DNA from: Macrostomum lignano
Lineage: Eukaryota
NCBI GenBank assembly: GCA_002269645.1
Contig: NIVC01000297.1
Coordinates: forward strand, 62,001 to 126,000
Length of the DNA: 64,000 nucleotides
Direction of reading: 5' to 3'
Shown piece by piece: positions 53,674 to 55,140 of the stretch; position 1 is the stretch's first letter, and each line of letters opens with the position of its first letter. Position numbers and translations under genes: made by a program. A model generated the notes under the pieces. That model was not told the DNA's origin. It was given only the letters and a program-made list of their open reading frames with translations, and made no database searches.

Positions 53674-55028
53674 CTACTTGTTCCTCGAAACCATAACGAA
53701 TTCAATATTTTCTCTCTCTTCTAATAGTCGCTTGAGCTGGTGGCGACGTAAACGCTCCACGTGAACATTTGACGGCAATCCGTCTGGCCAGCCGCTCCAG
53801 TGCCCGAGAGCTGTCGCTTTTTTATGGCTGTAGAGCCCGGTTCCACCAGCTTTCCCTAAACAAGATTGGGAATGGAGATTCAAATCTCGACTTGAAATCT
53901 TCGATTTTCAAAAAAATGTTTGGACATGTTGAGCCAATATCGACAATATTAACTGACAAGTGCACTGAAGGTCTAAGTTGAGTAAAACAATCACAATCGA
54001 AAAACACTCACTGAACTTGTCGCGCAGCATTAGCCGTACGTCTTCACGGAGGCATAGTGTGGTTTTTTCCACAACTTTTTCTTTCTTGTTGAAGTATTGC
54101 TGCGAAAGAAATATATGCACATGTCTAGATTTCATGACTTGAAAAAACAATTTAAATTAAAAGGGCATTCCAGATGACATGATTCAGTTACTAGTAACTA
54201 AAATGTCAAAAATGCAGAAGAGATAAAAATAAAAGTATGCTTCCCTAAAAATATTTCAAACAGCTTTACTTACGTCATATAAGCCTATTTCCTGGGTTTG
54301 GCACACACGCTGCATGGCTGCCGATTGGATTAAAAATGGCTTCCTCATTTTCCCAATGCGTCCGAAGCAGCCAATTTCCGAATCCGGGTGCAAGGCCTCC
54401 AAAATTTTAACCTGAAACGAAAATTTAAGTAAATATAAAAAAAATATTAAGTCTGTAGATAATGTAAAATACCTGATAAATTGAAAAAATCAGCAGCAAT
54501 TTGGTATTTGGTATTTAAACCTGCCATTTGGGACTGCTACGATCGATAAAACTACGCAAATCTCATTAATTGTCATCACTTTTTTACTGCTGAGACCATA
54601 CCCACTTAAACAGTCGGATTCGAAATATAGATGCTACAAAAACGCAACACAATACGAGTTGTACAAGTACCAGTATGAAATCCCTAAATAAAACAACGAA
54701 AGCTTACGTTTCGCTTAATGGCCTTTATAGCCAGGCTAGATTTTCTTTCATCGTCGGACTGTCGACGCTGGGAAACTTCAATGCGAAGTTTTTGCAGTTC
54801 CTGCTCCGACAAGGCCTTATACCGAGCGGACAATTCTTGCAACTTCTCTAAAAAGTTAAAGAGAAAAAGTTGCGAAAACAGGGTACATGTCTGCATAAAT
54901 ATATTTTACTTGTCGACAGCAACTACAAAAAATTATTGACCTTTATTCAATAGTGTACTACTAGGAGTTCCAGGAACGTGGTTGCGCCTCAAAAATAGAC
55001 TCCAGGTCGTGAGCTGTTTGTCCGACAT
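53674..55028 (-). CDS. Five-exon gene (55028-54941, 54847-54708, 54411-54274, 54099-54012, 53855-53674; 211 aa) with HMG-box-like N-terminus and C-terminal GTF2I/TFII-I-like repeat
   Basis: Four GT..AG introns (93, 296, 174, 156 nt) with compatible phases 1,0,0,1 give one stop-free frame. C-terminus [35 protein letters not shown] resembles the I-repeat LRKQVEELFERKY..GLPEGIP..RLERILLAKERIRFV. Gene model is better supported than the domain call. Confidence 0.75.
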
Positions 55029-55140
55029 TTACTGAAAAAATATGCATAAAAATTATTTCCCGGCATTTAGACCCTCAGATTCTTGAAATTCACCTACACC
55101 AACAGCATACATGCGCAACCTTGGAAATCACCCCGCCGTT

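Follow-up and report, generated by a model that had tools for sequence, protein, structure and literature searches.

A five-exon gene of the flatworm Macrostomum lignano encodes a small basic protein whose C-terminus resembles a single GTF2I-type repeat

The question raised by this locus is whether the I-repeat, a domain present two to six times in the vertebrate proteins TFII-I, GTF2IRD1, and GTF2IRD2, also occurs in a flatworm. In TFII-I and GTF2IRD1, vertebrate I-repeats are reported to contact DNA and/or dock partner proteins, and no relatives of these repeats are known beyond vertebrates. TFII-I has been described as vertebrate-specific (PMC10721858), the GTF2I-like repeat fold has been mapped as a gnathostome synapomorphy (PMC9541633), and "GTF2IRD2-like" annotations outside mammals correspond to hAT transposases, not to I-repeats (PMC10641963). 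The DNA analyzed here (hereafter the window, i.e., the whole stretch of 64,000 nucleotides) comes from Macrostomum lignano and matches contig NIVC01000297.1 (assembly Mlig_3_7, GCA_002269645.1) at 100% identity, spanning its positions 62,001 to 126,000. On its minus strand lies a five-exon gene encoding a protein of 211 amino acids (aa), and we consider it quite probable that residues ~139–206 of this protein form a highly diverged single GTF2I-like repeat, with a similarity that would reflect homology rather than convergence. Slightly less firmly, we propose that the locus as a whole represents a transcribed, host-resident M. lignano gene whose small basic product, with its diverged single I-repeat, is likely a nuclear factor.

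The five exons, all bounded by GT–AG introns, span 55028–53674 and join into 636 nt in frame. Every coordinate of the gene model proposed in the earlier note was borne out, and the translation is identical to the 211 residues predicted there. The features of the gene are as follows, in window coordinates:

54941–55028, minus strand: exon 1, 88 nt; start codon ATG at 55028–55026; residues 1–29 plus one base; conserved W9.
54708–54847, minus strand: exon 2, 140 nt; residues 30–76; a 12-residue motif resembling HMG-box helix 2–3.
54274–54411, minus strand: exon 3, 138 nt; residues 77–122; variable linker; conserved E117 and G119.
54012–54099, minus strand: exon 4, 88 nt; residues 123–151 plus one base; helix 1 of the I-repeat-like domain from 54051.
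53674–53855, minus strand: exon 5, 182 nt, the last three being the TAG stop (53676–53674); remainder of the I-repeat-like domain and a short tail.
55032–55037, minus strand: TTTCAG acceptor, separated from the ATG by three bases; candidate spliced-leader trans-splice site.

Exon 4 ends at a phase-1 intron that splits the codon of R152, and the I-repeat-like part of exon 5 (KAGG...GWPDGLP...) reaches ~53692. The four introns (93, 296, 174, and 156 bp) are all of the GT...AG type with pyrimidine-rich acceptors, and their GC content is 29–35%, compared to 47.6% in the exons.

Although the gene had been described as hidden, it is already present in both GenBank and UniProt, if only as a hypothetical or uncharacterised protein, and the closest database match is an uncharacterised M. 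lignano protein. The GenBank model at the locus (BOX15_Mlig005214g2, PAA86014.1) is a partial protein of 126 aa that shares the start codon and corresponds exactly to residues 1–126, thus covering junctions 1–3. Two further GenBank proteins, PAA65676.1 and PAA84887.1, are encoded at duplicate loci whose exons are identical; both correspond exactly to residues 98–211 and thus cover junctions 3–4. The M. lignano GenBank gene set was built from a genome-guided RNA-seq assembly from which transcripts overlapping repeats were removed (PMC5730564), and since these models rest on RNA-seq transcripts, all four junctions have indirect transcript support. Papers naming the locus tags were sought in a literature search, and none was found. 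The gene and its protein are already public, with function unassigned, and it is the similarity to the I-repeat that appears to be new.

The annotated isoforms and the start of the gene deserve a few remarks. A weaker alternative donor (GTGTGC) lies after 54307, 33 nt upstream within exon 3, and is used by two 200-aa UniProt models, which omit 11 residues including the paralogue-invariant E117 and G119. The longer form of exon 3, ending at the 54274 donor, is the one found in the GenBank models, and its 11-residue segment is conserved in the paralogues. Another UniProt entry, A0A1I8IEV4 (79 aa, "40S ribosomal protein S15"), is the same gene with exon 4 skipped and the frame shifted, and its name is wrong. 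At the 5′ end, the TTTCAG that directly precedes TAAATG, and with it the start codon, fits the spliced-leader (SL) acceptor motif of M. lignano, [T/C]TNCAG (PMC8629364), and the locus tag ends in "g2", in keeping with a gene separated out of a longer transcriptional unit (tag scheme: PMC5730564). Judging from this motif, the mRNA is probably trans-spliced to the SL. The SL ends in an ATG, and if trans-splicing occurs, this ATG would run straight into the TAA at 55031–55029 and then the true ATG, all in one frame.

Apart from its own fragments and isoforms, the protein has two paralogues, and the family comprises three paralogue groups genome-wide. The first paralogue (P0006; PAA69595.1, BOX15_Mlig022106g1) is 31% identical to the window protein, and the second (P0007; UniProt A0A1I8GVQ9) is 24% identical. 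Because P0006 has its four introns at matching positions and in matching phases, these genes represent an established family and not retrocopies. All three paralogues follow a common architecture, consisting of an N-terminal W, a YkaLS.eEkkKF motif, a variable linker with E.G, and the C-terminal I-repeat-like domain, and all three are basic, with isoelectric points of 9.5–10 (~10 for the 211-aa protein). PAA69595.1 differs from the window protein in having its own Ser/Gly/Ala-rich C-terminal tail of 60 aa. UniProt names A0A1I8GVQ9 a "Plus3 domain-containing protein", but no Pfam family, Plus3 included, matched it at E ≤ 10, and the automatic annotation behind this name is probably spurious. 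At the P0006 locus (L006), the gene for a KDZ (Kyakuja-Dileera-Zisupton) transposase is found 7 kb downstream (16220–17375, minus strand), and an unrelated CCCTCCCTATA-type minisatellite lies 2 kb upstream (5000–5877).

Searches with the window protein alone were uninformative: Pfam returned only RhoGEF67_u2 (E = 0.025), nothing usable, and single-sequence phmmer of the whole protein against the Protein Data Bank (PDB) yielded nothing usable either. For the C-terminus, we aligned the three paralogues, and this alignment (A2) was used for profile search, hhalign, and AlphaFold2. Among 177,635 distinct PDB sequences, hmmsearch with A2 placed GTF2I repeats at each of ranks 1–4 (2dn5 with E = 0.1, then 2dn4, 2dzq, and 2dzr; E 0.1–1.5), with alignments running end to end (columns 15–85 against 6–81). 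Profile–profile comparison of A2 with six PDB I-repeats by hhalign gave P = 6.6e-4. The comparison was calibrated on a vertebrate profile of 12 sequences with 300 column shuffles, and both halves of the domain exceeded every shuffle: the helix-1 half scored 23.9 (best shuffle 20.7), and the second half alone 22.3 (null mean 8.9, standard deviation 2.0, maximum 15.3). Both halves align to the corresponding parts of the repeat and are collinear. In the reverse direction, a hidden Markov model (HMM) built from the 12 vertebrate GTF2I sequences only ranked the exon 5 frame first among 1,481 stop-to-stop open segments taken from the window and the paralogue locus (E = 0.018). This HMM scored the window protein at 12.0 bits, a value reached by none of 3,000 shuffles.

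The predicted fold points to the same domain. Single-sequence AlphaFold on the whole protein gave a model that was not usable (predicted local distance difference test, pLDDT, of 52.6), and AlphaFold2 run on A2 without templates reached a pLDDT of 77.9 and a predicted template modelling (TM) score of 0.68, with the elements H3–28, E44–47, H64–72, and E78–81, i.e., a long helix followed by a strand, short helices, and another strand. When this model was compared to 350,542 PDB chains with Foldseek, the top ten matches were ten nuclear magnetic resonance structures of GTF2I domains (probability 0.82–1.00, TM 0.62–0.76), the same ten GTF2I chains found by sequence, and the probability at rank 11 was 0.05. 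A Foldseek search of a viral structure library, from which this domain is absent, returned only noise. The predicted topology is thus that of SCOP fold d.288, with GTF2I domains filling ranks 1–10, so that the structural check suggested in the earlier note came out in favour of the I-repeat.

Gene structure provides a further line of evidence. The sole intron within the domain is in phase 1, splits the R152 codon (TTC A/GG), and falls in column 14 of the repeat according to both HMMER and hhalign; P0006 has an intron in the same place (TAT C/GG). In two vertebrate genomic contigs carrying I-repeats, a phase-1 acceptor is found in the same column 14 (...tctag/GG GAA GCT in L004 and ...cgcag/CG AAA GCC in L005). 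For one intron in a 75-codon domain, the chance of sharing both column and phase is ~1 in 225, and beyond the gapless alignment of helix 1 this evidence does not hinge on residue similarity. The earlier proposal of an I-repeat-like C-terminus was therefore supported by the PDB profile search, by hhalign with empirical nulls, by AlphaFold and Foldseek, and by the intron column and phase.

Set beside the vertebrate I-repeat (PF02946, SCOP fold d.288), the domain is alike over ~75 aa, with a predicted topology that superposes on the ten PDB structures at the TM values given above. The positions in common are LRxxVxxL(F/L)xxK(Y/F)xxAxG, G-(L/W)-P-x-G-x-P, LxxLL, and IxFV, the phase-1 intron stands in the equal column, and the host protein is basic in both cases. 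The differences are nevertheless substantial. Identity to vertebrate I-repeats is ~22–26%, under Pfam detection, and the M. lignano protein has one repeat instead of two to six, within 211 aa compared to ~950–1000 in the TFII-I family, and in a flatworm as opposed to vertebrate hosts. The earlier suggestion of a single-repeat form in an invertebrate was supported insofar as one I-repeat-like domain is present in a flatworm protein.

Several observations weigh against this assignment. The direct HMMER check suggested in the earlier note failed, as PF02946 gave no match at E ≤ 10 to any of the three paralogues, whether as full proteins or as isolated domains, and there was no Pfam match to the domain at all. 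Database E-values are all borderline (0.007–1.5), and both the profile and the AlphaFold model rest on only three divergent sequences. The vertebrate HMM scored the three paralogues at 12.0, 6.0, and −1.0 bits, with P0007, the most divergent of them, doing no better than shuffles. Only two of the five AlphaFold models were confident and the other three were poor, and AlphaFold may favour a memorised fold. The vertebrate loop motifs PV.VPY and PFRRP are not kept in the M. lignano domain. Finally, the distribution is very patchy: HMMER/phmmer searches of 1.84 billion representative proteins and two word-indexed searches found no relatives outside M. lignano, and none were found when metagenome and viral contigs were scanned.

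These points are the basis for the strongest of the alternatives, namely that we are dealing with an orphan protein of this lineage, and that its C-terminus came to look like an I-repeat by chance or convergence. Such a resemblance would need only an LRxxVxxL...K[YF] helix, a G-x-P-x-G-x-P turn, and a hydrophobic strand, together with AlphaFold snapping to a memorised small fold, and it would account for the missing Pfam match, the borderline E-values, the three low-confidence models, the failure of P0007 to stand out from shuffles with the vertebrate HMM, and the fact that the protein searches found no intermediates in other phyla. However, convergence does not readily explain why two separate collinear segments each beat all 300 shuffles, why GTF2I domains occupy the top four sequence ranks and top ten structure ranks of the whole PDB with nothing else close, why a blind scan of open segments chooses exon 5, or why the column and phase of the intron are identical. 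Nor was the shuffle test permissive, as it rejected another resemblance that had been noticed by eye: the linker "RACAVVSF..FETSEEAG" had seemed similar to the N-terminus of TFII-I ("VACIAVYETDVFVVGTERG"), yet hhalign scored this pair at 8.6, and 172 of 200 shuffles were as good or better. Overall, we regard chance or convergence as unlikely, and a diverged I-repeat as the better account of residues ~139–206.

The likeness to TFII-I appears to be limited to the repeat. The N-terminal 146 alignment columns showed no similarity (score 8.6) to the N-termini and leucine zipper of TFII-I, GTF2IRD1, and GTF2IRD2 in a lead-level comparison. Since the N-terminus lacks TFII-I similarity at this level of testing, the M. 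lignano protein would not be a miniature TFII-I, and the repeat alone would be shared.

The N-terminal region had been read as HMG-like, and a part of this reading stands. An alignment of the paralogue N-termini (A4) was compared by hhalign to eight HMG boxes, all matched strongly by Pfam; the result was a match of only 27 columns, with a score of 25 and P = 2.7e-4, whereas the best of 300 shuffles reached 18.8. The matching motif, F..k..eaS..YkaLS.eE.kKf, spans HMG helix 2 and the beginning of helix 3. The local likeness to HMG boxes (PF00505/PF09011) therefore consists of a helix 2–3 motif of the form ..F.e..k..s..W/Y-K-x-L-S-x-x-E-K-x-K-F/Y in a basic helical N-terminus. The box as a whole was not established. 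There is no whole-box profile match, the parts corresponding to helix 1 and helix 3 are unsupported (65 of 150 and 120 of 150 shuffles, respectively, reached the observed score), and the basic KRP N-terminal strand is absent.

If the N-terminus were nonetheless a true degenerate HMG box, the gene would encode a two-domain DNA-binding protein combining HMG box and I-repeat. This possibility draws on the hhalign score that beats all 300 shuffles, on HMGB1 and HMGB2 box A appearing in the PDB profile search with E 0.2–0.6, and on the conserved W9, which a global alignment puts at the aromatic position of helix 1. Against it, the signal is confined to the 27 columns, and the motif is unspecific: the HMGB matches are mixed with other proteins, namely J-domains, histone H2B, Lmo1102, and enkurin, which hit this motif at E-values as good or better, and the motif is equally like helix 3 of the J-domain. 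Pfam HMG_box and HMG_box_2 gave no match to the N-terminus at E ≤ 10 in a check that matched all eight control boxes, and the low-quality single-sequence AlphaFold model shows one long helix (29–83), not an L-shaped three-helix box. We therefore treat the HMG reading as a local resemblance, with a whole domain not established and a true degenerate box doubtful.

The gene is present in several nearly identical copies, which bears on how it came to lie where it does. Contigs NIVC01001629.1 (L002) and NIVC01000356.1 (L003) are collinear with the window over ~47.0–57.9 kb at 97–99% identity. In the sequenced DV1 line, 180 Mb fall in duplicated blocks of ≥95% identity (PMC5730564), and L002 and L003 are segmental or karyotype duplicates of this kind, not transposon copies. 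Exons 1, 3, 4, and 5 are identical in L002, L003, and the window. One segment is missing from both duplicates:

54566–54931, strand not applicable: 366-bp segment absent from L002 and L003, comprising parts of introns 1 and 2 and all of exon 2; the gap lies at ~4778–4785 in L002/L003.

Because the loss of exon 2 makes a splice from exon 1 to exon 3 shift the frame, the L002 and L003 copies are annotated only from Met98 (114 aa). These copies are either young pseudogenes or the source of a repeat-only isoform, and would encode at most an N-terminally truncated protein of linker and repeat. The exons are identical, and the introns and flanks of the duplicates differ at only 4 of 683 sites; the duplicates are thus too young for selection to be inferred from them.

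That the gene is cargo of a DNA transposon, or was recently derived from one, as the earlier note had suggested, is very improbable: transposon-like open reading frames (ORFs) do lie nearby (59411–59839, minus strand, with a weak HTH_32 match, and 50339–50899, plus strand, with a Cys-rich tail), the KDZ transposase gene is 7 kb from P0006, and there are at least four near-identical copies of the gene, but no terminal inverted repeats of ≥20 nt flank it in the 50–59 kb region of the window (12-nt exact seed), the copies sit in collinear blocks of >10 kb that represent segmental or karyotype duplicates, the P0006 locus has no flanking DNA or ORFs in common with the window locus, the paralogue groups number only three genome-wide, the GenBank gene set left out transcripts overlapping repeats (PMC5730564), and viral contigs yielded nothing. 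Nothing ties the gene to the nearby transposon-like ORFs.

Two related minisatellites frame the gene:

55220–55511, no strand assigned: upstream minisatellite with a 25-bp unit in 11.6 copies; its TTCCAGAA core is in common with the downstream array.
53226–53571, no strand assigned: downstream minisatellite with a 28-bp unit in 12.5 copies, ~80% similar to the upstream unit and oriented like it.

Both minisatellites also occur in the duplicate loci, with different copy numbers. At lower window coordinates, an 836-aa "ORF" at 44397–47026 (plus strand) is made of Pro/Leu/Ser/Phe-rich tandem units (PLLPFRPHPLLPFRP...), and the 44–48 kb bins show extreme GC skews of −0.75 and −0.44; this region looks like a long tandem-repeat tract and not a gene. 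A G-rich tandem array occupies 48927–49453 (61-bp period with a 30-bp sub-period, 8.6 copies, 96% match) and varies in length in L002 and L003. The 186-aa ORF at 50339–50899 (plus strand) has no Pfam match, and its Cys-rich tail (CRQC...CSQCPGVPPYC) is like the C-termini of piggyBac-type elements. A 1.4-kb segment (50579–52001) is present in the window and in L003 and absent from L002. On the other side, collinearity with L002 and L003 stops near 57,885, and what lies past this point may have been inserted into the window copy. It is here that the 142-aa ORF at 59411–59839 (minus strand) lies, a GenBank-annotated gene whose weak match to HTH_32 (homeodomain-like) is typical of the N-termini of Tc1/mariner transposases.

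By analogy with the vertebrate proteins, the M. lignano product would most likely be a small basic nuclear factor that binds DNA or protein. The I-repeat-like domain would then serve DNA contact and/or protein docking in a nuclear regulator, as vertebrate I-repeats do, and the helical N-terminal ~85 residues could provide a second surface, for nucleic acid or for dimerisation. Should the similarity instead be convergent, what remains is a lineage-specific gene of the ordinary sort, for which annotation already exists. As far as the evidence goes, and InterPro listings aside, we are looking at a known domain in a new form, with one highly diverged repeat, in a phylum where it was not expected. 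Whether it also records how the vertebrate family arose is, to our judgement, evenly balanced: the I-repeat could be an old bilaterian module, first held by a single-repeat protein, with its phase-1 intron kept and with tandem multiplication following later in the vertebrate TFII-I family. For the cognitive and craniofacial features of Williams-Beuren syndrome, the leading candidate genes are those of TFII-I and GTF2IRD1, and with a flatworm homologue a minimal one-domain form would be available for studying how a lone I-repeat acts. Transgenesis and RNA interference are established in M. lignano, so that the role of the repeat is testable in this animal. On this old-module reading, no I-repeat outside vertebrates would have been recognisable before the M. 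lignano family, other invertebrate copies having diverged beyond the reach of Pfam. A single-repeat homologue in a flatworm would move the origin of the I-repeat back to early bilaterians; Pfam-negative "orphan" genes of flatworms can, on this account, conceal old domains.

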